Below are positions 11,497-54,160 of a DNA stretch of 64,000 nucleotides, piece after piece (the stretch's first letter is position 1; each line of letters begins with the position of its first letter). The notes beneath the pieces are model-generated. The model worked only from the letters and a program-made list of their open reading frames with translations, did no database searches and was not told the origin of the DNA. Both the position numbers and the translations under genes were made by a program. Source of the DNA: Botryllus schlosseri (lineage: Eukaryota); the NCBI GenBank assembly GCA_051294905.1, contig CM119375.1, positions 7,006,001 through 7,070,000 on the forward strand, written 5' to 3'.

Positions 11497-11506
11497 CTGT
11501 ATATAA

Positions 11507-11884
11507 TAGGGTTACCATACGTCCTCTTTTTTGACTTTTTTGAAAGTGTCCGCGGAGGACGCCCTTTTGTCCTCTTTTTTGAAAATTTAGGTCACATTTA
11601 GAGCAAAATGCGAGTGATATACCGTAAATTAGCACAGAAGTGACGCTCCGGCGGGTATTTCGGAGTGAAAAACGGTGATTTAAGCTCTGAGCGAAAAATT
11701 GACCTTTTTTTTTTCTTTTTTTAGTCAACCACCTAGCAATGTGGAACGGGATTTTGAGCTCTGAGCGGAAAGTTGACAAAGTGGGAAAAATTCACCGATT
11801 TTTGAGAATTCCTCTCCGGTTTTGCAAGTCTCAAATTTCGGAAAAAGCGTCCTCTTTTTAGATTTCCAAAATATGGTAAGCCTA
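11507..11884. mobile_element. hAT-type MITE (TAGG-ended)
   Basis: TIRs tagggttaccata / tatggtaagccta; perfect TSD GTATATAA; inverted relative of 4312-4759. Confidence 0.85.
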
Positions 11885-12002
11885 GTATATAATGTTTAAC
11901 AACTGCGTCTATTCCCCACCGGTTGGGAACCACTGGTCTATAGAAAGCATAAACAGCGCGCCGGGATTGCGCTTCGAAGTTCAATACACAAGCTCATTTC
12001 AT

Positions 12003-12317
12003 ATTGACGCGAAGCTCTCTCCCTCTCACTGCGCAGCCACTCTTTGGCTCTTTAGCTATTCTCTCGTTTTGCCAGACAGCATTGTTGCGTCCCAATGCCA
12101 ATCTCCATAACAATGAAAAATTGGAGGCTGATTGTGGGGGTTCCAGGGCCGCGAGCGGAATAAAATTTGTATTTTCGTAATCAGTGCAGAGTCAGCTTTC
12201 GATTGATACCCGTTTTACCAAATTTAGTTCTCGGCAAGCCGGTCAAAAATGACTGTCAAATTGCCTGTAGCCAAATGGAAATTGTGACGTGAATCAATTT
12301 CACTGAGCCATGAGATT
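12003..12317 (-). repeat. Right arm of the ~320-bp inverted repeat pair
   Basis: Reverse complement of 5191-5513. Confidence 0.85.
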
Positions 12318-12319
12318 AG

Positions 12320-12690
12320 CCATCAGTTCAATACACCACGAAAATTCGACACAATGAAAAGAAAGGAAGGTGTCAAAGCGACTTGGAGTAGTCTTTGGAA
12401 TCAGACACCCACCTTGGCCTAGGCGATGTGAAGAGGAGGCACGCACACTGAAGATAGTATAGAAAAAAGCAAGCGAGAAAAAATGGGGTGGCATGTCATG
12501 GAAGGCGAGATCGATAGGTCAGGCCGTGGTCCGGTAATCTTTAGGATGAACTAGTATTTATTTAGTAGTAATTGCTTGTATTGGTACTTGAATGTGGACA
12601 TGCTCGTCGATTGTCGAATGGCCGGCGGGATACTGTTCCACACGTCAGGTCCGATATATTTGATAGAGCGATGATCTTTTCGGTCGATCA
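12320..12690 (-). mobile_element. L2/Crack-type LINE 3' end (family B) with ORF2 C-terminus
   Basis: Minus frame reads RKDHRSIKYIGPDVWNSIPPAIRQSTSMSTFKYQYKQLLLNKY* (stop at 12553-12551), followed by the 3'UTR shared with the other copies. Confidence 0.75.
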
Positions 12691-12910
12691 TATGATATAT
12701 GGAGCATTATGAGCAAAAAGCTATCAGTATCACTGTAGGAAGTATCTAGTATCTCCGTGTTCTTCAGTGATATGAAGCAAAGAAATGTAGTAATACCGAA
12801 TAGCAATTTTTTGTGTTAAAAATTGTTTTAAAATGAGAAAAAAACTTTGCAGAACCATCACGAATCACGTGACCATTATCGATTGCATACCTATACTGCC
12901 TCCAATGGGC

Positions 12911-12925
12911 ATCACCAATAGCGAC
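12911..12925 (-). promoter_or_regulatory. Candidate RFX X-box upstream of KIF3A
   Basis: GTCGCT-ATT-GGTGAT is a degenerate match to GTNRCC-N0-3-RGYAAC, ~140 bp upstream of the ATG of a ciliary gene; an E-box CACGTG lies nearby. Confidence 0.3.
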
Positions 12926-13065
12926 GGCTCATATTACGACAAGCTGGTCTAGAAGCGGAATGCTGTGGTGTGTTATAGAGTTGAGCACCTCCACGATTCA
13001 GCTATAGTTTCGTTGAGAAGGAGATTTGTCAGTTGATTATAGCGAGACCAAACTAAGCACTAACT

Positions 13066-15111
13066 ATGTCATCATCGAAACCGGGCGACAGCGGAGACAA
13101 CGTCAAAGTAGTCGTGAGATGCCGCCCACTTAACGACAAGGAACGTGGCCAAGGTTTTCAAAGTGCAGTTGAAGTTAACGAGGTACGCGGGCAGATATCT
13201 GTCCGCAAAAACGTTGCAGGAGCAGAACCCCCAAAGGTATTCACCTTCGACACCGTATTCGGACCAGACAGCAAGCAAGTGGATGTTTACAATCTGACTG
13301 CACGACCTATCGTAGATTCAGTTTTGGAAGGATATAATGGGACTATCTTCGCTTATGGACAGACTGGAACTGGGAAAACATTCACTATGGAAGGTGTTAG
13401 ATCTGTTCCAGAATACAGAGGCATAATTCCTAACTCTTTCGCCCAAATTTTCGGCTATATCGCAAAGGCACAAGGCGAGTCACAATTTTTAGTGAGAGTA
13501 TCATATTATGAGATTTACAATGAAGAGGTCCGTGATCTCCTTGGAAAAGATCAGCATGCGCGACATGAAGTTAAAGAGCGCCCTGATATTGGCGTGTACG
13601 TAAAAGATTTGTCCATGTTTGTCGTTAACAACGCAGATGACATGGACAGGATTATGACGCTTGGTAACAAAAATCGATCAGTCGGTGCCACTAACATGAA
13701 TGAACATTCGTCTCGTTCTCACGCGATTTTCAGTATTACAGCCGAACGCTGTGAAAAGGGTGTGGATGGTGAAAATCACGTCCGAGTTGGCAAGCTTCAT
13801 TTAGTAGATTTAGCTGGATCTGAGAGACAGACTAAAACAGGTTCGTCGGGTCAAAGGTTGAAGGAAGCCACCAAAATTAATTTGTCACTATCCACATTGG
13901 GTAACGTAATATCCGCGTTAGTTGACGGTAAAAGCACACACATTCCGTACAGAAACTCAAAACTCACGAGGCTCTTACAAGACTCGTTGGGAGGTAACTC
14001 AAAAACAATGATGTGCGCGAATATTGGCCCGGCCAACTATAACTACGACGAGACTATTTCCACTCTACGGTACGCTAACCGTGCCAAAAACATTCAAAAT
14101 CGTGCGGTCATCAACGAAGACCCAAAAGACGCATTGCTACGGCAATTTCAGAAAGAAATCGAAGACCTTAAAAAGAAATTACAAGACGGTGGTGGAGATG
14201 GCTCTGGTAGTGAATCAGAAGAGGAAATTGGACCTGACGGTACTGTAACTCGAAGGAAGCGTACTGGCCATAAGTCCTCCGCGAAAATGCTGGCGATACA
14301 AGAAAAAATCGAAGAAGAACGTAAAAGGTTGTTGGAGCAAAAAGAAATGGCGGAAGAGCAAAAAAATAAAGTCAAAGCGGACTTACAAAAACACGAGGAT
14401 GAGTTAAAGAAAGCAAAAGAGGAACATGATCAGTTACAAGACCGTCTTAAAGCTATCGAACGTAAAGTCATCGTAGGTGGCGTGGACCTACTGAAAAAAG
14501 CGGAGGAGCAGGAAAAACTTCTCGAAGAATCCAATATGAAACTGCAAGAACAGAAAAGACAGCAGGATGCTCTACGGCAGCAGATTGAAGAGAAAGAAGC
14601 TGAAAGAGTTAACATTGAAGAAAAGTATAGTTCTCTGCAAGATGAGGCTGTCGGAAAGACTAAAAAGTTGAAAAAACTGTACTCCATGTATTTAGCCGCG
14701 AAAGCAGAATTAGAAGATCTTTCTCAAGAGCATCAGAGAGAGATGGAAGCTCTTATTGATGGAATTCGCGACACTTCGAATGAGCTTGAAAAGCAAACTT
14801 TAATCTGCGACGCGTACATCCCGCCTTTGTACTGGGCGCTTTTACAGGACCAGGCTCAGTGGAACGAAGAGGTTGGCGAGTGGCAGATGCCTTGTATCGC
14901 GTACACCGGGAATAACATGCGACGGCCCAGTCCTGGTCCGGTTAAAAATGATGACGACGATACTGCGGCGGACTTGTCCCACGTTTATTTGGCGTACACA
15001 GAACAAGCGTTGCACGAGCAGTATGGTAAAAAGCCTTCGAAATCAGGAGGTCGTGGCGTGAGGAAAAAGAAACGCACTACGCAGGCTGATATCAACGCGG
15101 TTTTGGAATAG
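13066..15111 (+). CDS. KIF3A: Kinesin-2 motor subunit KIF3A, single-exon CDS (681 aa)
   Basis: P-loop [22 protein letters not shown], coiled-coil stalk, KIF3A-type tail [21 protein letters not shown]. Confidence 0.95.
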
Positions 15112-15275
15112 TGCAATTTACCTTAACGACTAAGTGGATGTTATTGTACCAAGTAAGCCAAAAGGAGGAATCGCACCTTTGGAAATTAGTGTTCTGAAAG
15201 TCGTGGCGTTTTATTTTGGTGTGCCATACTAGATAATTGTATTGTGACATTGTGTGATTGATATTTGTCCGTACT

Positions 15276-15765
15276 CAGAGGGGGTCAGTAACAAGGTACT
15301 TCTACTTCTGTGAGTACTCGAGTAGATTTTGCGTACTTCAACTACTTACTCTAGTTGTTATGTTTTTACCCTGGTTTTAGATATTTGTACTTCAGTTTTT
15401 AAGGTAAAGAACTACTTTCGTTTTTAGACTTGGGATTTTGTAAATTAGGATGCAATATCGGGGTGCGTTTGGGTCACCTTTACGAGTGAAATTGTGATAC
15501 CAACTGCGAAAAATAGCTTCCGTTCCACGGTTAAGAAAAATATTTTCGAAAATTGCAACCGTTTGTAGTGACATTTGTAATTTTGTGTGACCTCGCGATC
15601 GAATCTGCTTTTTGAAATCACTTACTTGAGAACTTTTCATACCTTCATTATCCACTTCCACTTGAAGTAGTTTTGACATATCTTGGAAGTGGCTCATTAC
15701 TTTTACTTGTATTCGAGTATAAAGTTACTTGAGTACCAGCGATGGCTACTTTCTGACCACCTCTG
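15276..15765. mobile_element. hAT-type MITE with TACTT/AAGTA arrays
   Basis: TIRs cagagggggtcag / ctgaccacctctg; family fragments also at ~1628, 22812-23328, ~25549-25814, ~28955, ~41745. Confidence 0.7.
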
Positions 15766-16628
15766 AGATACTATACATCCTATACATACTGATATTCATC
15801 ATATACATACAACTCACTTGGTTGTTGTCTACTAACTGACATGGCCCTACTGTAATTCAACGCAGTGAAGAAATCCAGCAACTTTGTCCTCGCTGTCAAT
15901 ATTCAACTCATTACATTGCAATATTTGCTCCTGAAATTTTCATCCATACCAACCTTATTCGATTGCTGTATTTGCACATATACTTTAGTTGCGTGTTATA
16001 CTCGTTTCTTGATATTTCACATGCAGAATATATAGGTGATATTGTATTTGAGTGATGTGTATGTGCTTCACCGTGTTACATATTCTATATTACCTGTTAT
16101 TATGATGCTATATTGATGTTCTATCGCATTCTCTGTATTATTTAGTATAGGTCAAGTTTTAAATTACGGTATGTTGGCAAAACTCCGTAGACAACTTTAA
16201 TTCAGAGTCAATCATATGATTCTAGCATATTTTGTTCTATGTTGCAAAGACCACTTCATGTTGTCATACATATTAGAAATGGTTCATGTTGTGGATTGTG
16301 TAGTAGTCCGTTATTTACTTAATGTGTTACAATAATTGCACAATATGTGTGAAACGCATACCCTTGTAGATAAATGTGAGGAATCAAATTGCAGAAATTC
16401 ATATCTTTACACATTTATATCCACAGCTGTATACGGGCACGACACAGAGTTGATGTCGTTGTAAGTATTTTCATGTCCAACTAAATGTAATATGTTTTCA
16501 ACTTCGGTGAGCCGCGTTTTCTGTAATATTCTGCGCTCATGTGATACATCGTATTTCGGGATCCTCAATCATTTTTTGTATCTTACATTTATTACAGTTT
16601 ATACATAATACAACCTTGTGAAACGACC

Positions 16629-19600
16629 ATGGGCTCTGTGATTACTCGTGCCGCCCACTGGACCTCGGTATCCGAGAATGGAACTGGCAAATTGGAATTC
16701 TCCCCCCTGAACGAGATGCTCTTAAATGAGATTATCCAGGTTGGATATTTATTCCAGTGGGTATATAAAAGCCAAGGCACTTAGCACTTCTCCTGGATTG
16801 GATGGTAACGAAATGAGCAGTCTTCATTTTCATTCGACGTGCTCAATATATAGATTGTGATATACCACAAATATAGTGTTGGTAGCGTATGTAACATAAA
16901 AGCAATTCAATTCAACCTATCATCCATCCGGTTTCCTGATTCATGTACCATTCCACTACGATTGATGAAAATTGTGTCAAGGCTTGCTGTCAGCAGTTAC
17001 CACTCGGACGATGCCTGGCTGATTTGAATTACCACAATTCAACAAGCTTATGATTTTTCTGATTTAAAAAATCTAAGCTAAATACCGTGATTTTATTCAT
17101 GTTTCATGCGCGATTGCTCTTTCTTTTAAAGTACGTGGATAACTTTCCATTGAAACACTCCAACGAAGCCAATCTCCAGTTCAAAGACCCTTTGACGTGG
17201 ATGTCATCGATTCCCATCAATGCGTTCAGTCAGTATGATGGAAGGTAATTCAAAGTTTTCATCTGCTATGAGTATGCTGTGATTCTGTGGTATACACTAT
17301 CACGGTTTTGCATTTGGAGATAATGATCTGGTGTTCTGGAACTTGTGCAGGGTAGTCCTAGTTTTATCTCTCAGTCTGGCTGTATTGAAACCTGTCAAAT
17401 TGTTTTAAATCACAATTTATAATATACATTTTGAATGTGATTGAGTATACCATTACTGTAATGTGGATATTCCTTTTAGCACATCCAAGATAACATCTGC
17501 CGAGCAAGATGATCAAGGCAATCCGTTACTGGTCTATGACGGACAAAAGATTCAAGTGCGAACAATGAAATTCCTAGCCACAGTGTTGGGCAATGCACGG
17601 GACCAAAAACTTGCCGAAGCGCGAGCCTGTCTAGAAGGTATGTGATTCTTTACAAGTAATTTCAATGACCATACAGTTACCAGTCTGATTGCAGAACAAA
17701 ATACAACGTAGCAGATTGGAAGCCCGTGCTGAAGTCAAAAATGTCCTTTCTAATGATTTATGTTGTTGCTACATTCTCGCTACAGGACAATAGAGAACAT
17801 TGAGGTGGAAGCAGCAGTGCAGTGATTGAAAATGTAACAGGTATCCAGTGCAGAAATGAGTTTAGATGGCAATATGCAGTGTTTTGGGTTATGTTTAAGT
17901 CAGTTAGTTCATGAGTAATTCCCTGTCAACATGCAAATATTTTTTAAATCCGTCTCCACACCCTCTCAGATTTTTCTCTAAATCTACATACAACTAAAGT
18001 ATCTAGTTCTGAGTACAACAAAATTTATTTCGGACAATTTCGTTGAACGGTTCTCGAGTTATTGCAGTTTGAAAAATGATAATTTTGTGGTTACTCAACC
18101 ATGAAATTTGGTAACACAAAACCTGTGTATGATTGTAACTGATATAGCTCAGAGGTTACGTAGAGTAAAGGTTTGAATGTTATTTAGCAATAATTGTTGG
18201 TACATGTTCTTCACTTACCACGAATATCCCCGCTCCACAGTATTGGGTCAAGGTTCAAAACGCGATTTCAAAATTGGCATATGTTAAAATCGGTGATGCA
18301 TAACGATATTTTTCAACTCATCTGGTGCAATTCTATTTAAACCAAAATTCACAAGCAAGGTGTCATTTGAAAGCTGTTTCCAACTAGAATGCACGAAACA
18401 TAGTTTTATTATTGATATTTGACAGCAACATGGTTAAAAATATAATATGGTGCATAATGCAAAATAGGTCATTTTTTAATTAATTTTAATTATATTAATT
18501 CAGTGATTATCTGATTTTGCCATTATTCTACTCGTTATATGATAATGTGTTTCAGTAGATAATTATTGCCATGCTCAGAAAGTACCTTTATTTATTGCCT
18601 GTGCATTATGCTTGCAAGGGTGCTTTTGGGTTTACCGACTATCAGTAATTCGAGTCAACATCCAAATAATATTTCAATTCGTCTTCACACCCTCTCAGAT
18701 TTCTCTGCAATATCATGTACAACTAAAGTACCCAATTCTGAGTAGAATAGAATATAATTAATATAACTTTATTGATCGGTTCTTGAGCAATTGCAGCAGT
18801 ATGAAGAATGAGGATTTTGTGCTTACTCAACCATGAAATTTGCGTATAATTATAACTGCTAAAATCATACTTATACAGGCTGCAGGTAGTAATGCTCCTG
18901 TTTGGAATCGGTGTCCTGTGCTCACACTATATTTATTTTTTTAATTATTTTTTATTAAATTACTTCAACTTGGAAAATCATCGCTGATCCCCTGATATAT
19001 CAGGCAAAAAGGCCAGCGATTCCAATCAGGTAATGCTGGTAAGCAATGATTGGTAATACATGTTCTTCACTCACTAGGAATTCCCCTCCGCATTACAGGA
19101 TCAAGGTTCAAATCTTGATTTGAAAATTGACATACCAGTATGTTAAAATCAGTGATGCGTGACGATATTTCCTAATCTCTGGCACGACTCTATCTAACTC
19201 AAAATTCATAAGTAAGGTGTCATATGAAAGCTCTTACCAATTAGAATCCATCAGACTTGGTTATAAATTGAATATAAGATTGGAATACGGTTAAAAATAT
19301 ACTTTGACACTTTATGCAGAACACGTCATGCACTATTTAGAGCGCATCTTTTCAATTAAGTTTTAGACAAGTGGCAGTCAAATATCACATGCAATACCAA
19401 TTCAGCAATGTTCTACTCTTTCCAAGCTTCCATTTGACACCTTCCTAGAAAAAATCGGTTTAAATAGAATTACGCTAGGCGGAGTTGCATATTTGTTACG
19501 CATGGCTGATTTCGAAAACATGATGACTTTGAATTGACATTTGACCCCTAACCCCCATTAGTAAAGTTAAAAATTTAGGTCTATCACAATAAGCATATAC

Positions 19601-22600
19601 CAAAATATCTTACTACAGAAATTTAAGTCTGCCCGGCAGCAATTTGATCACTATAATGATAATTACAATTACACACAGGTTCCAAGCGGTATAGCGTCAC
19701 GGCCGAGTGAGCACAAAATGTCATTTTTCAAATTGCAATAACTCTGTAACGAATTGTCCGATGTTCTTGAAACAAAGTTTGTTATGCACCAAATTTAATG
19801 CCTGATCGATGTGAAAAGTTTCAATTTGATCTGAAATGGGTGTGGAGACGGGCGTTTGCATGTTGAGAGGGAATTACTCTCATGTGATTTATTGTATAGA
19901 AGGCGACATGCAAGGAAGAAATTTGGGTATATAAATCCAAGTCTGGAGCTAATTGAAATGATTTGAGTTGAGGAGTGATGTTGAATCCTGTACTAGAAGA
20001 AGCTCATATCCCCTAACATTGCAACCGCTCCTGAGCAGTTTTCAGGCTTTTTCCTATTAGCATACAGGATTAGAAAAGGGTATCTGTATCATATTTAACA
20101 GTGGTTTGCATGTATCATGGTAACACGGTTTACATCGCAGTCATCACTATTTGTTTCACATTGCGTACCCTGTCATGTCTTTGTGTGAATGAATAATTTA
20201 TTAGTTGTCACAGGAAGTAGATAAATTTATTCCATTAAATCTGTTCGCCTGTGTTTGCAGTCATGGTTCAGCAAATTCATTTTGCCATATTAAATATTCA
20301 TTTGAAGTAAAACAAACCGCGAGGTGTTAAATCCATGTGCAATAGCTGCCACCATATCAGCCACTCATGACAAATGAGTCAAGTATGCCATCTATGATTA
20401 TTTGTACCAGGTTTCACTGCTTGCATTGGGCATATCATCTCACTTTTGTGATGAAGATTCGGGCACTAAATTACAGAGACATTATATCGTTCATTACTGC
20501 ACAAAATTTCAATATTTGTAGTGAGTAGTCAACAATTGAAGGTAAACAAGATATATTCAGTCACTCAGTCCAGTTCTATCATGCATACAGTAAATTTGAC
20601 TAAAAAATTGCCTGCCTGAGTAACTCCTAGTGAAGCAAGTACAAATGAATCAACATTGCCTGTGACAAATATTCTATTTTAGCTAACAGGGATCCATTGG
20701 TGAAGATATTGGGTCCAGGCTTCGCCACCATTGAAGGAGAGGACACAACCGTGATTCGTATGGTTGACAAGGTTTGGTTTATCTGGACGAACTTTCAGTC
20801 GAGCTTCATGTATTAACACGCAAATATTTTCTAAAGATGAAAAGTGAGAACCAGGAAGAAATGTCAACCCAACTGAGGTTCCTGCTTTTGATTCAACAGT
20901 TTGACATGAAACTTCTAAACTCGTCGTTGCAACATATTTCCAAGTGAGAAGCATTCTTTGTGTGTTAACTTAATTTGCATTGTGGACCTAAGCCAGGGGT
21001 GGCTAACCTTTTTGCTATTCGCGGCTGCATTTCGATTACTGATGTAGCCTACAGCCCCATTCCAGGACATAGTCGCAATGAACTAACCTTTGATCACCTC
21101 TGGTTACTGTGCGTGAATACGAGTTTGTCTTGTTCCCATGTAGATTTTTGGTAATATATACTCCTTCTAATACAGCGTATCATTACATGGTCATTATCCT
21201 TTTTTTCAGAGAGGTAAGGCTCACTCCGGCTTCGGTAAACGATGAAGTAGCACTGCTTCAGTCTTTCTGCGGTGACGATCCTACTACTCCCCTGTTGGAT
21301 ATTCAATTCACGTCATGTGAGTAAAGTTGCATAATTTGGTAGAGAATGATGAAGTCTAAATTGTGAGCACTTCTTGTCTTGTAGTCGTAATGATAATATC
21401 TGCGGTATTGTGGTCTTAATTGACTTTGAATTTGGCGGCCTATTGTTTTACTGTGACATATATGTCTTCTATGTTTTAGCGCACATGTTCAGTAATGGCT
21501 GCCGCGCTGTGCCTTGGCGTCAGGTTCACGGCGACATTTCCTACATCATTATCAAACCCCATGACGGCGACAGCTTTTGCATCACAGCAAGCAGCTATGG
21601 GTGTTTTGTCAATGGGGTACAGTCATATGATTGTTTACGAAGGTTCCGGTTGAAATGCATTCTTCTTTACTGATAGGGTGTGGAGCCGGAAAGTAAAGAA
21701 GTCAATCACGAAAAGAGGTCGGATGTGTACAAGGATATCGCTTCCCTATTGATGGCAAAGTCTGTGAAGTTTTCAGAAAACATCAAAAATAAGGTACTGC
21801 TTGAAAATTCCTATCTTGCTTGAATAAAATGTTGTGAGTTTCTTGGAGGTACAGAATTGCAATATGCAATCTAATAATATATTCATATGAATATAAACCC
21901 GAATATTTCCGGCTGACACTCGTCAGGGGTAATCGTCAGCAACTACCAACTAGTATTTCCAGTATCTGGATCTCTTCACCTCGATTATTCGAAATTTCAT
22001 GCCGGTTACGCCATATTAGGTGATAGGATTGTTGATGTACAATTTTCTTTTCAATTCTTTAGTAGTTACTGGCGATTACCCCTGTGGAGTGTCAGCCGAA
22101 AATATTCGGGTTTATTTCAATATGAATATATTATTCAATGGTATAAAATGTGTTCTATTTTAACTATATCATTTATCGACATCCCTTCTATTAGCAATCA
22201 CTTCAGTGACAAAAATAGATTTCTGTTTGTAAAGTTCCTGTAAATAATTCAAGTGTACTGCCTTTTTCCGAAAGACAAGTATGTCAGTTTTCTCGAAGCA
22301 ACACTCTTTGTACTTGGCTTGATGTTGAGCGAATCTCAAACTTCAACTTTGCAGTACTTGGCCTGATGGTGCCTATAGTTATTGTGTTATCGCTTCGTAA
22401 GAGATCTCAGCGCAGTAAGCCAAATGTGGTGTCGGTGTACATATCCAATAGAAAATTTGATATTATAATGGATTCCTGTGTGAAAGCCGGAACGACCCCT
22501 TTGATAATAACATATGCGATGGTATATTGTGTTGATGACATGACCTCATTGAACATCGTGAACCTCGTACAGACCTTGGTCTTTTACCCATAAGTTTTTT

Positions 22601-36361: not shown

Positions 36362-37661
36362 ACATAAACTAAATATTCGTGTACAAGAATGAGATAATAT
36401 ACCACGTTAGCGATAGCACAAACATCTGATTTTCAAACGCCACTACTCATTGTTACATCAGAAGTATTAGCTCCGCTCGTCATTGCGTAAGAAGTATCCA
36501 CACATAGTAAACACTAAACAGGCATGCGATGGACATTGTAGTATGATTGTAAGAACACCCCCGGTGGTGTATACTGTATATCAGGTTATCAATACACTGC
36601 AGAAGCCCCTATATCGCAGCAGGATATTGATCACCACTCTGCCTATAGTTTCAAATAGTAACTTATGTATTGATGTTTGGTTGTGCTTAGTTAAACTAAG
36701 TTTCAACGTTGCAGCTTGGCGAGCAGTAGGCCTATACGTACGCACGTACACCTGACAAAAATTCGGAATTTTGTACTCGTCGAATAAAACATTGCAGTTT
36801 CCACAACGAAGCATTACAAATAAACAGCTGCTGATATATATCATAACCGAGCCGTGCTTAGCCGTTTCTCGTAACAGCAGCTCGCAGTATCTGTATTAAG
36901 TTGAAGGCAGAATTTTTATGTTCACTATATCTTATTCTCATATAACTACTTCGTTACTCAGCATTTGGACCTGCCGCCATAACCATCCGCTTATATAGCC
37001 TGACATGTTAGCGTGGATTGTAGCTAGAATCAGAACCAACAGCAATTCGTCCCCCAGTCCGACCGTTGGTCAATTTTCAAAAGTGAATTTCGTCAATAAT
37101 ATTGGTCATTGCATTAGATTACTATTCATTTTTAACCTCTCTCAGCCCCGAGTGTCAGATTTACCTGTAGAGCTGGGGCACGTAATTCATAATTATAGCA
37201 TCTGGTATGTTGTTATAATTACTTTATTGTAGGTTGTTAATTCGTGACCTCCAGTCTGTTGATTAATCAAAAGATATTGTACTCGCCCAAACGTAGCAAA
37301 CTAAAAGAATATCTTTCGCGAGACGCACACACAAATTGTCATGGCTTTATTCCTATGTGGATGCGCCGGGTGGCATTTGCATTGTGGGCTCAGATTGGAA
37401 GGACAGGACTATTAACAGTCACGCCCACTCAGCGCGGCTATTGACAATTGATGAATACCGTAAGTTTCGGCCAAGGTATTTCTTTGGTATCGCATCCCGT
37501 GGAGTTGCGTGTTGGCTGAAACTGCATATGTCTTTGGGTGTGCTGTGGGATCGTGACGCGGTAATGACCTGCTCCGAAATGCCTGTTCCCATAAAATATC
37601 CTATGCATGTTTTGTCTTGAGGGGGAGAGGTATGCATGTCAAACCCAGCTATCTACTGGAG

Positions 37662-38141
37662 CAGGGGTCACCAACCGTTTTGAAACAAAAAACTACTTCT
37701 TGTGTAGTGTGTACTGATTATTGCAACGACCGACGGGTTACCACTCACTCCAGCCGTTTATCCGTGCTCAGTTGGATCTATTCACTTAATGTAAGACAAT
37801 CAAAGCACTGGGCCGGGTTTCCGCCCCTTACCAAGAACAAAAAACGCTCACTCGCCGGGACTCACACCAGCTCCTCCGGACTCAGTTGCGTTGCTGCAGT
37901 GCGCGCCAAAGCGCTAATCTCCGCGTCTAGACTCGGGAATATTAACTATAGATTCCCGTTGAGCCACCGCGTGGGCAAAGACGAGCAATGCCCCGATCGA
38001 CTGCGTTCGTATTCCTTGGGGTCGGCCGACCCATGTTCAACTGCTGCTCATATGAAACCAGCTTCAACTTTCAAATCTTTCATTTGAATATTTGCTACAG
38101 CGACCGCGGGCGACTCATTTGGTTCGCTTTGGTGACCCCTG
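37662..38141. mobile_element. hAT/Charlie MITE carrying a 28S rRNA fragment
   Basis: TIRs caggggtcaccaa / ttggtgacccctg; TSD tactggag/tactagag; empty site in the paralogous copy near 40000. Confidence 0.8.
37800..38098 (-). pseudogene. Degenerate 28S rRNA fragment
   Basis: Plus strand gacccatgttcaactgctgctcatatgaaacc and ttcaaatctttcatttgaatatttgctac match the antisense of conserved LSU sequence (GTAGCAAATATTCAAA...GGTTCCATGTGAACAGCAGTTGAACATGGGTC, recalled); weaker collinear match upstream; left boundary approximate. Confidence 0.8.
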
Positions 38142-40907
38142 TACTAGAGACATATGAATCACGAAGAACATTTTCAAGAATTAATTAAATTCTCGAAAAT
38201 ACTCTATAATTTATATTGGTTTACGAAATACTTTTGAGTCCCCTTCAAGCACGCTCCCCACCCTATTAAGGAATTTGGGGTGCGGCAGGTAAAGACCTGG
38301 CAATAATGCAAATCGCTGGGTGCGATAAATCACCCCAATAAAGTTGGGCAATTCGTATATTATGACGTAATAAGCAAATTACGCATGATGTATGAAGAGA
38401 GTTGATATCTCATTAAGCCTTTTCATCGTAATCCTTGTATTGTCTTCCAATATATCCTTTAAGATTATAGTACTAAGAAGCAAAACAAATGTAATCGTGA
38501 TTACTTTTCCAATGTAATCGTAATCGTAATCGACTACTTCCTGATTTTGCTGTAATCGTAATCGTAATCGCGTGATTCTGAAGTAATCGTAATCGCAATC
38601 GATTACATTCATGAAGTAATCACCCCATGTCTGAACTGAACACTCGTGAACAATGAATAGATATTATACCAGTTATTGAGAGAACAAACGTCTGATTTTC
38701 AAATGCCACTGCTCATTATTACGTCAGAGGTAGCCTATTGGCTTTGCTCGTCTTTGCGTAGGAAGTATCCACACATAGTAAATATATATTCGGTGCACAT
38801 TAGTGTGATTGTAAGAAAACCCACCGTGCTGTATATCGGTTTATCAATACATTCCAGACGCCACTACCTCGCATCATGATAATTAATCATAATTACCTCT
38901 CTGCTGCCTAAGTTAAAATAGCAAGTTTTGTATCGATGTTTGATTATGCTTAGTTAAACTATAGAATGTAATAGTTCCAATTCTATAGTTAAATGCAGTT
39001 TCACCGTTGCTGGATGGCGAGCAATAGGCCTATATGGTACGAACGCACAGCAGACAAAGGTTTAAAATTCTGTACTCGCCAAATAAAACATTACGATTTC
39101 CACAACGAAGCATTAAAATCAACAGCTGCTGATATATATCATCATAACTGGGCCGTTGTTTTGCCGTTTCTCGTAATGGCAGCTTGCATTACATTATCTA
39201 CATTAAGTTGAAGGCAGAATTTTTTGTTCACTTTCTGTTATTCTCATATTATTCTACTCAAAACGGGTCGCTATTTCATAATTCTTTACTGAGCATTTGG
39301 ACCTGCCGCCATAGCCATCGGCTTATATACCATGTTAACCATAGTTATAGCTAGAATCAGGATCAAAACAGCAAAAGCGTCCCTCAGCCAAACTTTGGTC
39401 TTGGGCCCCCATAGGGTAGTCAATTCTGAAGTTGAAGATTTAATTTCGTCAATAATATTGGTAATTGCATTATATTGCATTTTTAATCCTATCTCAGCGC
39501 CCGATGGTCAGATTTACCTGAAGAGCGCGCGGGGGGGGGGGGGTAATTCATAATTATAACATCTGGTGTCTTGCAATAATTACTTTATTGTATGTTGTTA
39601 ATTCGTGACCTCCGGTCTGTTATATGGCAAAAAGATATTGATTGTAGTGGCCCAAACTGCAGACTAAAAGAAAAACTTGCGTGAGACGCACACACAAATT
39701 GTCGTGTCTAATGCTCTGTGGGTGCCCGGGTGGCAATTGCATCGTGGGCTCAGATTGGAAGGAATGGACTGTTATTCACGCCCAGCCATCGCGGCTATCA
39801 ACAGTGGACACATACCCTAAGTTTTGGCCAATGTCTTTCTTTAATAGCACACTTCGTGGGGTCTCATGTTGGCCGAGACTGCATATGTCTTTGGATGTGT
39901 CGAGGAGCGGTATTGACTGAACCCTAAATGCCTATTACTATGAATTATGCATGCTTTAATTCTTGAAGGGGAGACGTATGCATTTCAAAATCAAGCTTTC
40001 TAGAGGCATTTAAATCGCAAAGCTCAAAGAGAAATTCCAAGTTAATGAAATCTCTCGAAAATGCTCTATAATTTATGTTGGTTTACAAAATGCTTTTGAG
40101 TCCCCTCCAACCACGCTCCCCACCCTATTGGGGAATTAAGGGGTGCGGCAGTTATGGACCTGGCAAGAATGCAAGTCACTCGGTGCGATAAACCGTGCTC
40201 TATCAAATGGGCAATGGGTACATTATGACGTAACAAGGAAACGTCCCATCTTTTTTTAAAGACAGTTGTTATATCATTTGGCCTTTCCGGCGCAATCCAT
40301 GTATTGTCTTCCAATATAACTACTACGATACAAAATAAATGTAATCGTGAGTAATCGTGATTACTTTTCCAATGTAATCGTAATCGTAATCGACTACTTC
40401 CCGATTTTGCTGTAATCGTAATCGTAATCGCGTGATTCAGAAGTAATCGTAATCGCAATCGATTACATTCATGAAGTAATCACCCCATGTCTGCCTACAT
40501 CACCTGTTCCTTCTCGAGAACATCACATCCCTTTCCCGAAAAGATTTGCTAATAGGCTACTTTGGTGTCCGATGGTTCAACAGATTCAGAACGCATTGTT
40601 ACTTCCGGAATTAATAAGAAGAGATTGGGATTGTCCATTCTCAAATATAGGCCTATCCTAACCAAACAAAGAAGTTGTCATCAGTCTTTTTGATAAAACC
40701 CGAGAATAAGAACTGAATAAAGCGGGTGTTTTAACACGCTCGGGCGGGTCCAAATGATAGGTCCCATAATGTGTGCGATGAGTCGTGTAAACCGTAATTT
40801 GGGACTGCGCTTCATATATTGGTACAGATGGCCAAGTTTTTTCATAGTTCGGGCCACAGGGCGTTAATATTGTATGATACTGACACGAAATACGCTTTTA
40901 AGTGGCA

Positions 40908-41667
40908 ATGAGCAGCAGTGGCGAGTCTTTGCTCTCGCCGTCTACATCAATCGAGTCCTTGGAGTGGGACACGCTCTCTGAACCGATTGCTGAAGATGCT
41001 CTTCGAGGACCGACTTCCAGCGGTTGCCAACTGAGCATGCGGGTTGCAGATTTACACTATTGGTTGCAAGAATGCGAACGTGCAGCGTACGAAGGCTTAG
41101 ATACACTTGCTGGATGGGAAGACGAATACCTGAGATCGAAATTCGCTGAAAATAAAGTATGATTCCGTTTGCAGCTAACCTCCGAGAAATCCTCCCTTAA
41201 TCGTCCTATATTCATTATGCTAGGTACTGGCGGTTGAGACGGCGACAAGATTTGACTTACTGACTGGCCCGTTTGGTCTTGAAACACCATCCAACGCCGA
41301 AAGAGATATTAAAATCATGTGGGCAGTCCTAATGGTTAAACAGCGACTCTTGAATCTCTTCATTCAGTCAATAAACCTGGAATGTACTCTCGACGAAAGA
41401 TTGGATTTCGTACGGAAGGTAAACTAGAATCTCTTCTGATTCAGGACTCATTGCACGTGAATCGATAACCTTAGGAATCATATATATTTCACAACGGGAT
41501 TGTAATGCAAAAGACGCATAGGCTATGGATATATACCTTATTACCTATACTTCTAGATACCTCGCTCCCCCAATTTCAAGATGCATCCAGCGAGGGACGT
41601 TTGGACCGAAAACGAAGAAGTCGCACCACTGCGAAGCGAATTTGAAAATGAGGATTACGAAATATGA
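40908..41667 (+). CDS. Uncharacterised 3-exon protein, 184 aa, with LEWD motif and spectrin-repeat-like segment
   Basis: Exons 40908-41156, 41224-41418, 41557-41667; both introns GT-AG (67 and 138 nt), both phase 0, all frames open, terminal TGA. Confidence 0.7.
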
Positions 41668-42528
41668 AAATAGGACTATTAATTGTAAACGCATAGTTCA
41701 GAGATATAAAGGCTCCGTACATACACATGATATAGTCAGAGATAGTCAGTAACGAAGTACTTCTACTTTTTGGAAGTACTCAACTAGTTTTCCACTACTT
41801 CTGGTACTTACTCAAGTAGATCTGATTTTCTCCACTTACTTGGTATTATTTTGTGATCTATACTTACTTACTTTTCGCTATTTTCGGTTTGTCAAGTAGA
41901 AGTTGTTTAATCCCCCAACACGAATGGTAGCCTGAGGAAATTCGGGGCTGTTTTCACGCAGTACCAACATTTTATATTCATAAAAGTCAAGTAAAGCCCA
42001 GAATTTTTTTGCGCTTCGCGCACAGTAGCCTAGTTATGGAGTGACAAATATGTTTCACGACAGTATCAGTGAATACAATTTAGGCAGCGGATTGCTTGGT
42101 TCCGCTCACACCGCATTGTCTTGTCACCCATATCAAATATTTCATCACAATAAATTTGGCAGACCATAACGTTTGAAACTACCGTTTCGCAATCTAGCAA
42201 TTACCTATCATATCGTAATCTAGCAGTGACGCGTCCTGCAAATCTGGAAAATGTGGCTTTTTGAAGGTTACACTAGTTAATCAGATCACGTTTGAAGCTT
42301 TATGGACAAAAGACATGAAATATACTTTTCGCTTTTTAGAAGTGGTATTTGTATTTCACTTTTAATTCCGAGTATCATATTTTGAGTTCTAATTACATTC
42401 AGTTCTTTTGTCTGCAGAACATACCTGTTGAAGTATAAAAGCGATTGTAGTAATGCCTCTATTTTCCGAAAATAAAGATACACTAAATATAAATTTTACG
42501 ATCCACAATATTTGATATTACAGTATAC

Positions 42529-43705
42529 CAGGGGCTCTCAACTTCCCTCGTATAACGGGCCACATTTTCACACCAAAAGACGCTGTGGGACGCAGAACAT
42601 CACCTTGTATTTGTCGGCTACTATTAAATTTAGGCTAGGCCTATTTACCAGTCTTCTACGGGCATTTAGTACATTTTTATGCATTCTAAAGAATTAATGG
42701 AGAGCGTTCGTAGGTTTGCTGTTTTTTGTGAGAATATATATCTTCAAGTGACGCAAGTAAATCCCTTCATGGAGCGTACATTCCATTGGCTGCCATGTCG
42801 TTGTAATGTACACAGTATACACCCTTCCACCAGAGAACAGAACTCTCTGTTTAAACGCGTGAGGGAGCAAGTATAAAATTACGGTGACTTTTTCGTTAGA
42901 GGGGTCATTATCACTTTGAGCTCTCAGTGATATAGATATAAGTCAGACATTCGGGGTCATTTCTGATCAAACCAATCAACTCTTCCCTTTCCTTCCCTTC
43001 CATGGCTGGAGCCCTACACAAATAGTTACTGAAGTCAGCTTTGTCATATTGATGTTTTTCACTAGTCCCCTTCCCACGTTTGCCCCGTCAGCATTTCCTC
43101 TGGATATATGCCCACTCTGATAAAACTTACCTGGATAATTAGCTATGCAATGTGTGCAGCCGATGGATCCGTCCAATGCTAGGCTAAAGTAGTCTATACG
43201 TGGCAACGTGTTTCAGAACATGCGATAAAATATCGACCGAGATCGCTGTTACTCTTCTGGCGACTGTTGAATCAGACAACTGTAGCTTCGAAATTTGTCA
43301 GATGATGTTGGACTTGCTGCTAAGTTCCGGAAACAACGAATATTCGCACACTACGTTAAAGTTTTATTGAAGTCACACCTTCTCTAGCAGATTCTTGGGT
43401 TTAGCGATATTCCAAGCAATTTTGAACAATGAGTCTGTCACGTCGTCGGCAACTTTAAAAATGCCTCGAAATATGGATTGCTGGGCTTGAAACCAAGCTA
43501 GCAACGTTTTCTCTAAGATCAGGCGATATGTATAACTCCAGATGAAACTATCGTGATATCATTTCAAGCTTCTGGGCTTTGTTACAACAACTGTTCTTCG
43601 ACAAATGTGACACATCGGTCTTCCATAGCAATACTGTGCCAGTAATTGCGTTCATACTGAAATATGTCGTGGGCCGCAAAAGAATCGTCTGCGGGCCGCA
43701 TCTGT
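42529..43705 (-). mobile_element. Decayed hAT element with transposase remnants
   Basis: Terminal caggggctctcaac at 42529; gggccgca subterminal motifs at ~43670-43700; right end approximate. Confidence 0.55.
42976..43495 (-). pseudogene. Frameshifted hAT (SPIN/GTF2IRD2/Buster-like) transposase fragment
   Basis: Collinear blocks FQAQQSIF...FKIAWNIAKPK, ISKLQLSDSTVARRV, YFSLALDGS (cf. FSLALDEST) and KLTSVT, broken by stops and frameshifts. Confidence 0.75.
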
Positions 43706-45871: not shown

Positions 45872-47632
45872 TCACAGCTGTTCCAATTCCGCCTTTGCGT
45901 TTTCCATATCCCTCGCCACGTCTGAAAAACCGGGCCTGTCGTCAGCCTCGTAAGTCCAACACCGCAGCATGATATCGTAATACACGTCGGGGCACAATTC
46001 AGGCCGGTCCAGCCTCTGCCCGGCATCGACCATCTGCAAAATCTCGTTGCCCTTCATTTTCTTGTAGGGCCGCCCACCGTACGAAAAAGCTTCCCACAAC
46101 GTCACGCCAAAACTCCACACGTCGCACTTTGTCGTAAATTTGTAATAGTGCAGTGCCTCGGGCGAGTACCACCGCAGAGGCCACCGTCCCGGCTGCGTGG
46201 ACCGGTAATAATTCTCTGTGTTCATCAGAACTTTGGACATCCCGAAATCTGACACTTTCGCGAAATTCCGATTCACAAGCAAAATATTCCTTGCAGCCAA
46301 GTCCCGATGGACAATATTCTGACTAGCCAGGTACCGCATACCATAGCAGACTTGCGTCATCAAAGAGGCCACATCGGTTACAGGAAATGAATCTGGAGTG
46401 TGGTTATCGATGAACGCTTTAAATGGACCGCCAGGAGCAAGTTCTAACACCATCATGATCTCAGCGCCATCATCGCAGACCCCTAAAAGCCTGACAATGT
46501 GCGGGTGGTCTAATTTCTGCATCACGGTCGCTTCTTTTATCAACTCTGTTTTGTTAGCGACGATATCGTCGCCTTTCAAGTACTTTACGGCACACGCGAT
46601 TTTCTCTCCACGCAAACGACAGTACCCTAGGCATACTTGTCCGAAATTTCCATCGCCTAGTCGCTCTTTCACGAAGATATCCCCCCTGTTGACTAGTAGG
46701 TCAGGTACCAGCCCGTCTGCGGCGTGATTCCAGTATATGCTTTTAAACGATTGCTGCTGTTCTGCGTCCGCGCATTTTTCCATATATTCCGAAAGCCATT
46801 TGTGCTTTTTGCGTAACGCGTCTATGTTTACAGTGGCGCCAGCCGCAAGACGCGAGTCTTGGTCCCATCGCATTTCCCCGATCCTCTCTTCAAAATCAGA
46901 CGGCAAAACCGGTTTTGACTGATTCCCTTCTTGAAACCCTTCTTGAAATCCAGACGGTTTTGGACATGCGACGGTCAGCTTCGTCTGTATACCTGTGTCC
47001 TCAGGACTGGCGAACCGATGAAACTCCACAAACTTTTCAAGGGACGGAAACTTGTGTTTCTCCGTGATAAAATACAATCCCGACGTCATATCTTGCACGA
47101 TGATATACCGATAAACGCGCGCGGATTTCACAAGACTTAAAACGTACTTGCGGTCTTCCTTCTTCCTAATCAAAAACAGCCCGTCCGCCTTCAATGTCCG
47201 GTATCCTTGCGTCAACCTTCTGGAATCTTCCTCGCGAGATATTTCATTGTGAAACCAATCAATTTCAGTCACATACGTGGAGTCTTCTACTGCATCGACT
47301 GGCTCGGCGTTCATATATTTTGGTTTGTTGGCACCAAGAACCGGTATTGGATAATCAAGCCTGACCTTCAAGCCGCCTTTCGAGTTTCTGTAATGCTCGC
47401 ATAGCAGTTCCAAGCTCGGAAAAGGAGTGCCGTTTTGTATCGAGTACATTATAGACCCTGTCGCGTTCTTTTTAGGGTTTATGCTGTAGTGGTAGCAAGT
47501 GCCTTGGAAAGCCAGCGAGATTACGTAAGTATCTCCTCTTTTACTTTTACGCAAGAGAAAAGTGCCGTCGTCTCGGCCATTGACAAGCTTTTCCGCGTCG
47601 TCCCTGCCCATGAGACCGTGAAAAAACTCCAT
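45872..47632 (-). CDS. SYK: SYK/ZAP70-family tyrosine kinase (tandem SH2 + kinase), single-exon CDS, 586 aa from first ATG
   Basis: SH2 cores FLLRKS and FLIRKK; GDGNFG, HRDLAARN, DFGMSK, activation-loop NYYR, WYSPE; no ankyrin repeats; the ORF track starts at an upstream TTG; symbol denotes family, not proven orthology. Confidence 0.88.
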   Translation of the reverse strand: MEFFHGLMGRDDAEKLVNGRDDGTFLLRKSKRGDTYVISLAFQGTCYHYSINPKKNATGSIMYSIQNGTPFPSLELLCEHYRNSKGGLKVRLDYPIPVLGANKPKYMNAEPVDAVEDSTYVTEIDWFHNEISREEDSRRLTQGYRTLKADGLFLIRKKEDRKYVLSLVKSARVYRYIIVQDMTSGLYFITEKHKFPSLEKFVEFHRFASPEDTGIQTKLTVACPKPSGFQEGFQEGNQSKPVLPSDFEERIGEMRWDQDSRLAAGATVNIDALRKKHKWLSEYMEKCADAEQQQSFKSIYWNHAADGLVPDLLVNRGDIFVKERLGDGNFGQVCLGYCRLRGEKIACAVKYLKGDDIVANKTELIKEATVMQKLDHPHIVRLLGVCDDGAEIMMVLELAPGGPFKAFIDNHTPDSFPVTDVASLMTQVCYGMRYLASQNIVHRDLAARNILLVNRNFAKVSDFGMSKVLMNTENYYRSTQPGRWPLRWYSPEALHYYKFTTKCDVWSFGVTLWEAFSYGGRPYKKMKGNEILQMVDAGQRLDRPELCPDVYYDIMLRCWTYEADDRPGFSDVARDMENAKAELEQL

Positions 47633-48751
47633 TTTCAAGACATTGATATTCTTGCTTATTAAGGACAGACTCGAAATACTGCAGAGGAAAAAATAGCACC
47701 GTCATTAGACACCGGATGTTGCTAATGTAACAAAAATTGAAATCGAATAGAAAGTTAAGTTATCCGCGCTTTATAGTAATGTGTTGAAAATGATATTGAA
47801 GCAGAGAGCTGTGAAGTTGCTTGCTTAGAAGATGTTCTGTAAATTGTGTCACCGTAACGATCAGTGAAAAGCTCTTTGTGATATATCTGATAAACGAGTA
47901 CGGGCTTCATTATATGCTATCTGTTATGCGCAGAGGTGGTCCACTGGTCCAATAGAAAATTATCATCTTTTCCAAATAACATCAGAATTATGGTTACAAA
48001 GTATTTTTCCAGATTAGATTTAAATTAGAATTATAGCTATACAGTTTTTCCAAATTAGATTAGAAATACTGAAGTCGCGAAAACTGGGACATTAAATAAG
48101 TTCAGTTCACATCAAATGATAGCGTCACGAGAATGAGAATAGTAAATGTATGTGCACCAAGCTTGCCTCGTTTCCCACTGTACAGTTTTCCTATAGCATA
48201 TAAATAACTACAAGAAATTAGATCAGAATTAAAGAATAAAATCATTTCATAAATCACCTCTGGCTATACGTGTTTCAATGTAATGTGCTAGAAATGATGT
48301 TGATGCTACTAGAAAAATCAACATTTTTTATGGTATAGGCTCTATCTGTGGCTATCTGCTATATGCATCTCATTGTAATGTGCTTAAAGTTATATTGATA
48401 CAAAGAGCTGTGAGGTAGATCCTCCATTAGTCATGCAAACCTATTAACTGTGCAAAAACATTGCAATATTTGTGACAAATGGGTACAGGCTTTATTTAAT
48501 GTCTAAATGCTAATGATTGGCCTAATGCAGTGGTTCCCAACCTGTGGTACGCGTACCACTAGTGGTACGCGAAGGTCTTCTAGGTGGTACGCGAGTAGAT
48601 TCTGTTGTTTTATTCGGCCGAAGGGAGTTATTAGTTCAGGTGAGGTTAATTTTGTATTTTTTGAAGATTTTTGACTAGTGGTGTAAAAACAGTTCCATGC
48701 ATCCCATCAACCCTGGTTGATAATGTCATGTTTAATATAATTTGTTATTAC

Positions 48752-53119: not shown

Positions 53120-54160
53120 ATGTCGAACGAGCAATCACACCGGTACATTTTAACCGATTCAGTAGTCCTGGAAGAATGCCCAGACACTGTCGAAAAAGTA
53201 CCTGACGAAAAGTCGAATATGTTCATCTGCGGAACGTACGAACTCCTCGAACAAACCAGCGAAAGTACACCGGCCCACCTCATGAACAGAAAAGGAAGTG
53301 TCTACTTGTTTTCTGTCGAAAACGGCAAACTCGAGCAACATAGTGTTATCGCGACTGAAGCTATCCTTGATAGTAAATGGCGTTCAGCAAAGACCGAAAA
53401 TCACATGTTTGGTACAGCTGATGCTGTCGGGGCTGTTAACATCTACAAACTATCCTCTGGTGATGCCACAGATGGTACCTATCATATGAGCATGATTTCC
53501 AGCATATCCGCAGTCAAAGAAGGACTAGCTCTATCAATAGACTGGTCTGTGAACGGTTCATCCATAGCATGCAGTGGGTCAAACGGTTCTCTCTCAATCA
53601 ATTCTCTCTCACCGTCAAGCACTCAACAAGTTTGCTCCTGGCATGCGCATGACGCAGAAGTTTGGATTACATCCCATGACATATGGGATGAAAATATATT
53701 GTACTCCGGCGCAGACGATTGCAAATTCCGCGGTTGGGATTTACGATCGAAAAAGCCTACGTTTACAAATTCGTCGCATGACGCTGGCGTATGTAGCTTG
53801 CAGTGCAATCCTTTATCGCCTCACACTATCGCTAGCGGTAGTTATGACGAAAAAGTCAGAATATGGGACACAAGATCGATACGCCGTTCTCCTCAGTGTG
53901 AGGTGAACGCAAAGGGTGGTGTGTGGAGAATAAAATGGCACAAGCAAAGAAAAGACATGATGGTCGTAGCATCTATGTATGGAGGGTTTGATGTTTTTGA
54001 TTTCACGAACATTGGTAATCCAGTGAGCAACACTTCCTTTAACGTAGCGAATGGGTCGTTGGGTTATGGTGTTGATTGGTTGTACGATGACGCAGAAAGT
54101 ATTGCATCATGCACATTTTACGATAAAAAACTGTTTGTCGGCACTTTGGAAAAGTGTTGA
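53120..54160 (+). CDS. DPH7: Diphthine methyltransferase / WD40 protein (WDR85), single-exon CDS, 346 aa
   Basis: FICGTYEL, ILDSKW, LALSIDWS, WHAHDAEVWITSHDIWDENILYSGADD, SGSYDEKVRIWDTR, GGVWRIKWH, SLGYGVDW, IASCTFYDK. Confidence 0.9.
   Translation: MSNEQSHRYILTDSVVLEECPDTVEKVPDEKSNMFICGTYELLEQTSESTPAHLMNRKGSVYLFSVENGKLEQHSVIATEAILDSKWRSAKTENHMFGTADAVGAVNIYKLSSGDATDGTYHMSMISSISAVKEGLALSIDWSVNGSSIACSGSNGSLSINSLSPSSTQQVCSWHAHDAEVWITSHDIWDENILYSGADDCKFRGWDLRSKKPTFTNSSHDAGVCSLQCNPLSPHTIASGSYDEKVRIWDTRSIRRSPQCEVNAKGGVWRIKWHKQRKDMMVVASMYGGFDVFDFTNIGNPVSNTSFNVANGSLGYGVDWLYDDAESIASCTFYDKKLFVGTLEKC

Follow-up and report, generated by a model that had tools for sequence, protein, structure and literature searches.

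An unannotated three-exon gene candidate for a small acidic protein with a conserved LEWD motif in the sea squirt Botryllus schlosseri

Introduction

Does a short interval of the Botryllus schlosseri genome encode a small spliced protein, and which kind of protein would this be? The window considered here is the whole stretch of 64,000 nucleotides that was analysed (GenBank assembly GCA_051294905.1, contig CM119375.1, positions 7,006,001 to 7,070,000 of the forward strand), and all coordinates below count from its first letter. At 40908-41667, an initial annotation had placed a hidden three-exon gene and described its product as a small, soluble, kinesin adaptor-like protein with several W-acidic motifs and a spectrin-like fold. 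The best explanation of the locus, in our view, is a genuine protein-coding gene, single-copy and unannotated in this sea squirt, whose three exons are essentially as described; we give it a probability of roughly 0.55. Exon 1 is likely spliced to exons 2 and 3, which would yield an acidic, soluble protein of 184 aa.

The gene model

Joining 40908-41156, 41224-41418 and 41557-41667 on the plus strand gives a frame of 555 nt, that is 184 codons and a TGA stop, and re-translation reproduced the three-exon, 184-aa chain of the initial annotation exactly. The two introns (67 and 138 nt) both have GT..AG boundaries and all junctions are in phase 0. The parts of the model, with the evidence on which each is drawn, are as follows.

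40901-40907, plus strand: 5-nt leader preceded by AG (40901-40902), read from the sequence upstream of the ATG
40908-41156, plus strand: exon 1, codons 1-83, with the start, a disordered acidic and Ser-rich tail and the first long helix (homologues, codon usage, SNPs)
40944-40988, plus strand: residues 13-27, a conserved block that includes LEWD (residues 18-21, 40959-40970) (three-sequence alignment)
41043-41150, plus strand: predicted helix 1, residues 46-81, including GWED (AlphaFold2 with alignment)
41157-41223, plus strand: intron 1, 67 nt, GT..AG (splice-site reading, homologue divergence)
41224-41418, plus strand: exon 2, codons 84-148, in which helix 1 putatively continues, followed by a loop and the second long helix (open frame, codon score, SNPs)
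41293-41415, plus strand: predicted helix 2, spliced-product residues 107-147 (AlphaFold2, exon 2 by itself)
41419-41556, plus strand: intron 2, 138 nt, GT..AG (splice sites, indels, pyrimidine tract)
41557-41667, plus strand: exon 3, codons 149-184 and TGA, with a proline-containing linker and an acidic tail ending in EDYEI (codon score)

The remark that the gene is hidden from the ORF track was borne out, exon 2 being listed only as a 36-aa ATG fragment (41317-41427) and exon 3 being unlisted; exon 1 is found in the ORF list as the 86-aa ORF 40902-41162. The frame of exon 2 is bounded by the TAG that forms its acceptor and by a stop 6 nt beyond its donor, and the acceptor at 41556 has 15 pyrimidines in 20 positions, the best tract among the in-phase alternatives. 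No AATAAA lies near the stop codon, the nearest being at 42149, and a TATAAA is present at 41705.

The AG at 40901-40902 is a possible spliced-leader trans-splice acceptor, or the segment may simply be 5' UTR; in three bulk RNA runs (6-13% sampled) no reads were found over 40901-40907. An upstream coding exon joining an acceptor at 40902, which the initial annotation had considered, is unnecessary because the ATG start is conserved in all three homologues.

By itself, an open three-exon chain of this kind is not beyond chance and proves little, because open stretches of 65 codons that begin no more than a few hundred bases from a given point are estimated to be common at 41% GC and the splice sites were freely chosen by the reader. 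The chain is lifted out of the range of chance by three further observations, namely conservation of exon 1 at the protein level, an excess of synonymous polymorphism and codon usage.

Homologues of exon 1

When its 83 residues were compared exhaustively by phmmer with 1.84 billion representatives, exon 1 had two relatives and no more: P0001, of 86 aa (88% identical, E 1e-39), and P0002, of 94 aa (47-51% identical, E 3.6e-13); a word-indexed search returned P0001 only. The two relatives were called at the ORF level, on short contigs (3222 and 1118 nt) in the assembly of a single public run. Aligned with exon 1, they share a common Met start, 38 invariant columns and an end at ENK followed by Val (GTN), after which the three sequences diverge and reach stops 1, 3 and 8 codons further on. 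A shared Met start with divergence directly after ENK-V (GTN) is the pattern expected from a conserved start codon together with a conserved GT donor.

A DPH7 homologue in the same run shares 57% identity with the DPH7-like ORF of the window. As P0002 (47-51%) comes from that very sample, it is probably an orthologue in a fairly distant relative, and the degree to which exon 1 has been retained roughly matches that of a housekeeping enzyme. Protein-level constraint on exon 1 (83 codons) is shown by these comparisons, and both its ATG start and its end at a GT donor are conserved in a relative whose DPH7 is 57% identical.

In the B. schlosseri genome itself (495.5 Mb, 219 contigs) the locus is single-copy, and P0002 maps back to this place only. 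A transposon ORF was ruled out by the single copy in the 495.5-Mb genome, and a candidate paralogue (C7, E about 1) proved to be an unrelated ORF; no similarity to nesprin or to any other gene was found in this genome. It was also observed that one run assembly carries both the 88% and the ~49% version of exon 1, and this genome has one copy; the run may contain mixed related species, or there may be a paralogue that is missing from this genome, either of which would fit.

A metagenome scan with the three-sequence alignment returned no relative. When the DPH7-like ORF was searched as a control, its best matches were 59, 57 and 55% identical (run assemblies) and the best named one, from Styela clava, 46%; Branchiostoma was absent from the matches, which speaks against an amphioxus genome and for that of a sea squirt. 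As the databases lack a proteome from any near relative of the species, the missing annotated relatives count for little in favour of the orphan label given by the initial annotation; as far as can be seen, the candidate gene is restricted to the sea-squirt lineage.

Exon 1 alone or a three-exon gene

The conservation of exon 1 can be explained in a second way, namely by a single-exon micro-protein of 84-94 aa that ends shortly after ENKV, with exons 2 and 3 as chance open stretches. No homology was retrieved outside exon 1, the stops of the three ORFs follow ENK-V after 1, 3 and 8 codons, and open stretches of 65 codons are, as estimated above, common at this base composition. Exon 2 has no relatives in a database of 5.8 billion proteins. 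The initial annotation had looked to RNA-seq junction reads for support of its model, and these did not provide it: reads on 39000-43500 from three bulk RNA runs (6-13% sampled) contain no joint at either intron. Read depth on 40510-41717 is zero in two of the three RNA runs, a value for which no expressed neighbour serves as a yardstick, and the third run contributes about three short fragments, all of them within exons 1 and 2. Among the indexed RNA runs, none contains the exons.

Against an exon-1-only protein, however, stands the fact that similarity among the three homologues ends exactly at the GT, and several properties of exons 2 and 3 point in the same direction. In both relatives, ORFs were called at the expected downstream place: the P0002 contig carries a 66-aa same-strand ORF 167 nt downstream of exon 1, and the P0001 contig a 49-aa same-strand ORF downstream of exon 1 that runs to the contig end.

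Polymorphism was read from a contig of another individual with the same species label (X1), which is unspliced, looks like genomic DNA and covers 40989-41764. Compared with the window it carries 18 substitutions, and a further 5 positions are gaps that make up two deletions (3 nt and 2 nt). Both deletions lie within intron 2, with no indel elsewhere, and intron 1 has 3 SNPs in 67 nt. Together with two further differences from RNA-run reads, the exonic differences comprise 7 synonymous and 4 non-synonymous changes, the latter all conservative, a ratio with P 0.004-0.02 under neutrality (expected non-synonymous share 0.71-0.78); the same differences read in two wrong frames give 5:6 and 1:10 (synonymous:non-synonymous). 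Five synonymous and three non-synonymous SNPs fall in exon 1, and exon 3 has a single SNP, which is non-synonymous (N to D). Exon 2 has the lowest diversity of any segment and its two differences are both synonymous, which speaks against a chance open stretch.

Codon usage, with three long ORFs from the window as the training set and 107 open stretches elsewhere in the window as controls, gave exon 1 a score of 19.6 bits, above all 107 controls. Exon 2 scores in the top 8% of the controls and exon 3 in the top 4%, again contrary to what an exon-1-only protein would predict. On the combined sequence evidence exon 1 is very probably coding.

Predicted fold

Structure prediction also bears on the exon structure. 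For exon 1 with the three-sequence alignment, AlphaFold2 gave residues 1-44 low confidence and no stable structure, followed by a single helix at residues 46-81 (10-residue block mean pLDDT 71-95) with the conserved positions HxWL...E..AY.GLD.L.GWE..YL. This helix reaches the last residues of the exon uncapped, an awkward end for a micro-protein that stops shortly afterwards, and in the model helix 1 perhaps continues into exon 2. Exon 2 alone, predicted with no alignment, forms a confident helix at exon residues 24-64 (41 residues, block mean pLDDT 82-98), preceded by a weak short helix and then a loop; such a helix is not what would be expected if exon 2 were a chance open stretch. A complex prediction of exon 1 residues 36-83 with exon 2 scored 0.01 with pLDDT <50 and thus returned no answer. 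Weighing these points, we prefer the three-exon gene and regard the exon-1-only protein as less probable, though it is a serious rival that accounts for the evidence almost equally well.

The spectrin-like fold of the initial annotation was not recovered, as neither Pfam nor the PDB gave a significant match and the pieces are predicted as two long helices. In detail, a Pfam-A hmmscan of the three exon products at E<=10 returned 0 families, a search in which the split between exons 1 and 2 lowers sensitivity, and Pfam on P0001 and P0002 returned no families. PDB sequence searches gave nothing significant, with chance-level matches (E 0.32, 1.5) or none, and the ESM Atlas had no usable match to exon 1 or exon 2. 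Two predicted helices rather than three argue mildly against a spectrin repeat. The description of the product as soluble and KASH-less, on the other hand, agrees with its sequence, which has no transmembrane or KASH region, no KASH match in Pfam and an acidic C-terminus; the spliced product contains 34 acidic residues against 18 basic ones, and its pI is 4.5.

Genomic neighbourhood

The initial annotation placed the gene downstream of two ciliary genes. This holds for orientation only: a kinesin-motor ORF and an Arm-repeat gene do lie upstream on the same strand, but about 6 kb of repeats separate the Arm-repeat gene from exon 1, including a repeat-rich tandem duplication, and nothing suggests co-transcription. 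The neighbouring features are the following.

13066-15111, plus strand: kinesin-motor ORF, 681 aa, upstream
about 28.3-34 kb, plus strand: Arm-repeat exons, upstream
45872-47638, minus strand: 588-aa ORF
53120-54160, plus strand: DPH7-like WD-repeat ORF, 346 aa, intronless

The tandem duplication just upstream of the gene consists of two copies of a ~2.3 kb unit (36400-38630 and 38670-40490) with collinear blocks of 77-99% identity, the first copy being interrupted at about 37660-38140. A 31-nt tandem repeat closes each copy (38552-38621; 40412-40481). Around this repeat, at 40208-40509, RNA depth is 15-60 in two of the three runs and ~2-7 in the third, with thousands in a DNA-like run, and reads jump back 31-97 nt with short inserted letters. 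This interval looks like a transcribed, copy-number-variable repeat family that is present at many loci. On the other side of the gene, 41718-42019 is a very high-copy element, with a word depth of ~10,000-20,000 per bin (up to ~40,000) compared with ~8 in adjacent unique DNA. The element begins ~50 nt past the stop codon, so any 3' UTR of the gene would enter it.

The LEWD block and its possible readers

The motifs present in the spliced product are LEWD (residues 18-21), GWED (69-72), VWTE (162-165) and the C-terminal EDYEI, the last of which we take to resemble the Y-acidic ligand of JIP1. Where the initial annotation spoke of W-acidic motifs in the plural, one of them stands. L18-E19-W20-D21 fits the [L/M]-x-W-[D/E] core with acidic flanks in predicted disorder and is conserved among the homologues; GWED is conserved as well, but it is embedded in the helix (pLDDT ~90), and VWTE is off the [L/M]-x-W-[D/E] consensus. 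In the surrounding block of residues 13-27, the best-conserved one of the alignment, 13 of the 15 positions are invariant in all three sequences (T13-E25 except position 22, plus I27). AlphaFold2 gives the LEWD segment a pLDDT of 50-63 and no stable secondary structure, and it is in disordered segments of this kind that short docking motifs reside. LEWD is rare by chance, with two occurrences in the 128,000 six-frame residues of the window, this site included.

Nesprins, UNC-83, SKIP and further proteins carry W-acidic motifs of the LEWD type, which are ligands of the kinesin light chain TPR and able to release kinesin-1 from autoinhibition (PMC12581424; bioRxiv 10.1101/2021.03.12.434960), and Y-acidic motifs also bind the kinesin light chain TPR (bioRxiv 10.1101/2021.03.12.434960). 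Since the kinesin light chain TPR is the best-documented reader of LEWD, a role as a kinesin-1 adaptor acting through this motif is our leading single guess at a function, put forward tentatively and, in absolute terms, unlikely. It may be called a reasonable lead resting on a single conserved motif.

How might the 184-aa product of the three-exon gene work? Its N-terminal tail of ~45 residues would be disordered and would carry the invariant ...SIESLEWD.LSE... block. Behind it would come two long helices (~40-50 residues) with a short loop (~11 residues) between them, forming a helical hairpin which might pair or dimerise; the C-terminal tail would again be disordered and acidic. In this proposal the helical part would attach to a cargo or scaffold, or dimerise on it, and a reader protein would be recruited by the exposed LEWD block. 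The most specific form of this proposal, a soluble lineage-specific adaptor in which LEWD recruits and activates kinesin-1, with the JIP1-like Y-acidic end perhaps helping and the hairpin holding cargo, we consider quite unlikely.

The same block might serve another reader. The core of the LC3-interacting type of motif (LIR) is [W/F/Y]-x-x-[L/I/V] with acidic flanks. W20-D-T/A-L23 fits this core, with S17 and E19 upstream and S24 and E25 downstream, all of them invariant and situated in a disordered segment. Binding of ATG8/LC3 through W-D-T-L is our next guess after kinesin light chain, and it would make the product a small selective-autophagy or ATG8-binding adaptor, not a motor adaptor. However, four-residue cores of this kind are frequent by chance, and L18 and D21 are invariant too, which is relevant to binding by kinesin light chain and not to an LIR; we judge an ATG8-binding role improbable.

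A further reading follows the initial annotation more closely and takes the protein to be a nesprin-like, soluble, KASH-less kinesin-1 adaptor with a spectrin-repeat fold and several W-acidic motifs. It would account for an invariant LEWD in a disordered tail, as the LEWD of nesprin binds kinesin light chain, and for a helical region of ~100 residues with Trp in its first and last helices. Yet Pfam at E<=10 returned nothing for the exon products and the PDB nothing of significance, two long helices are predicted and not three, GWED is helix-embedded and VWTE off consensus, and no similarity to any nesprin was found in the species' own genome, so that this reading is distinctly improbable. That the locus is no gene at all, being a chance ORF chain or a decaying remnant, would agree with the essentially absent RNA support, the lack of an annotated relative and the lack of a nearby poly(A) signal, but it is very improbable in view of the synonymous excess, the codon usage and an ORF of 47-51% identity that begins and ends alike in a relative with only 57% DPH7 identity, where neutral DNA would not have stayed open or alignable.

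Implications

At present the locus is a gene candidate of an ordinary, lineage-restricted kind, and a single conserved motif makes it suggestive. Should the three-exon gene prove real, the tunicate gene set gains a conserved, unlisted small protein, and the case would illustrate how spliced small genes slip past ORF-based and homology-based annotation in fast-evolving lineages. If, in addition, LEWD binds kinesin light chain, the protein would be among the smallest natural kinesin-1 adaptors and a minimal chordate model of motif-driven motor recruitment.

Comparison with known systems

Like a spectrin repeat (PF00435), the candidate is predicted to be all-helical over ~100 residues, with Trp in its first and last helices. 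In contrast to the three ~30-residue helices of that repeat (~106 residues), two helices of ~36-50 and 41 residues are predicted here, and there is no Pfam match. With LIR-bearing autophagy adaptors it shares a W-x-x-L core, Ser and Glu upstream of it and a disordered N-terminal tail; it has no homology to any known LIR protein, and the motif match is short and putative. The likeness to the Y-acidic ligand of JIP1 consists of an acidic C-terminus (EDYEI) whose Tyr is the third residue from the end, and it is a likeness by eye in exon 3, the least supported of the exons.

A further parallel is offered by the W-acidic adaptors of kinesin-1. Outside the motif the candidate has no similarity to nesprin, SKIP or calsyntenin, and it possesses no KASH, transmembrane, RUN or cadherin domain. 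At 184 aa it carries one convincing motif in place of a tandem pair, and binding is predicted from the motif only. As in nesprin-1, -2 and -4, UNC-83, SKIP and calsyntenin, however, an exact L-E-W-D is set in acidic, Ser-rich predicted disorder, and it is conserved here too; if the adaptor reading is true, the protein would represent a membrane-free, minimal counterpart of the nesprin, SKIP and calsyntenin adaptors.
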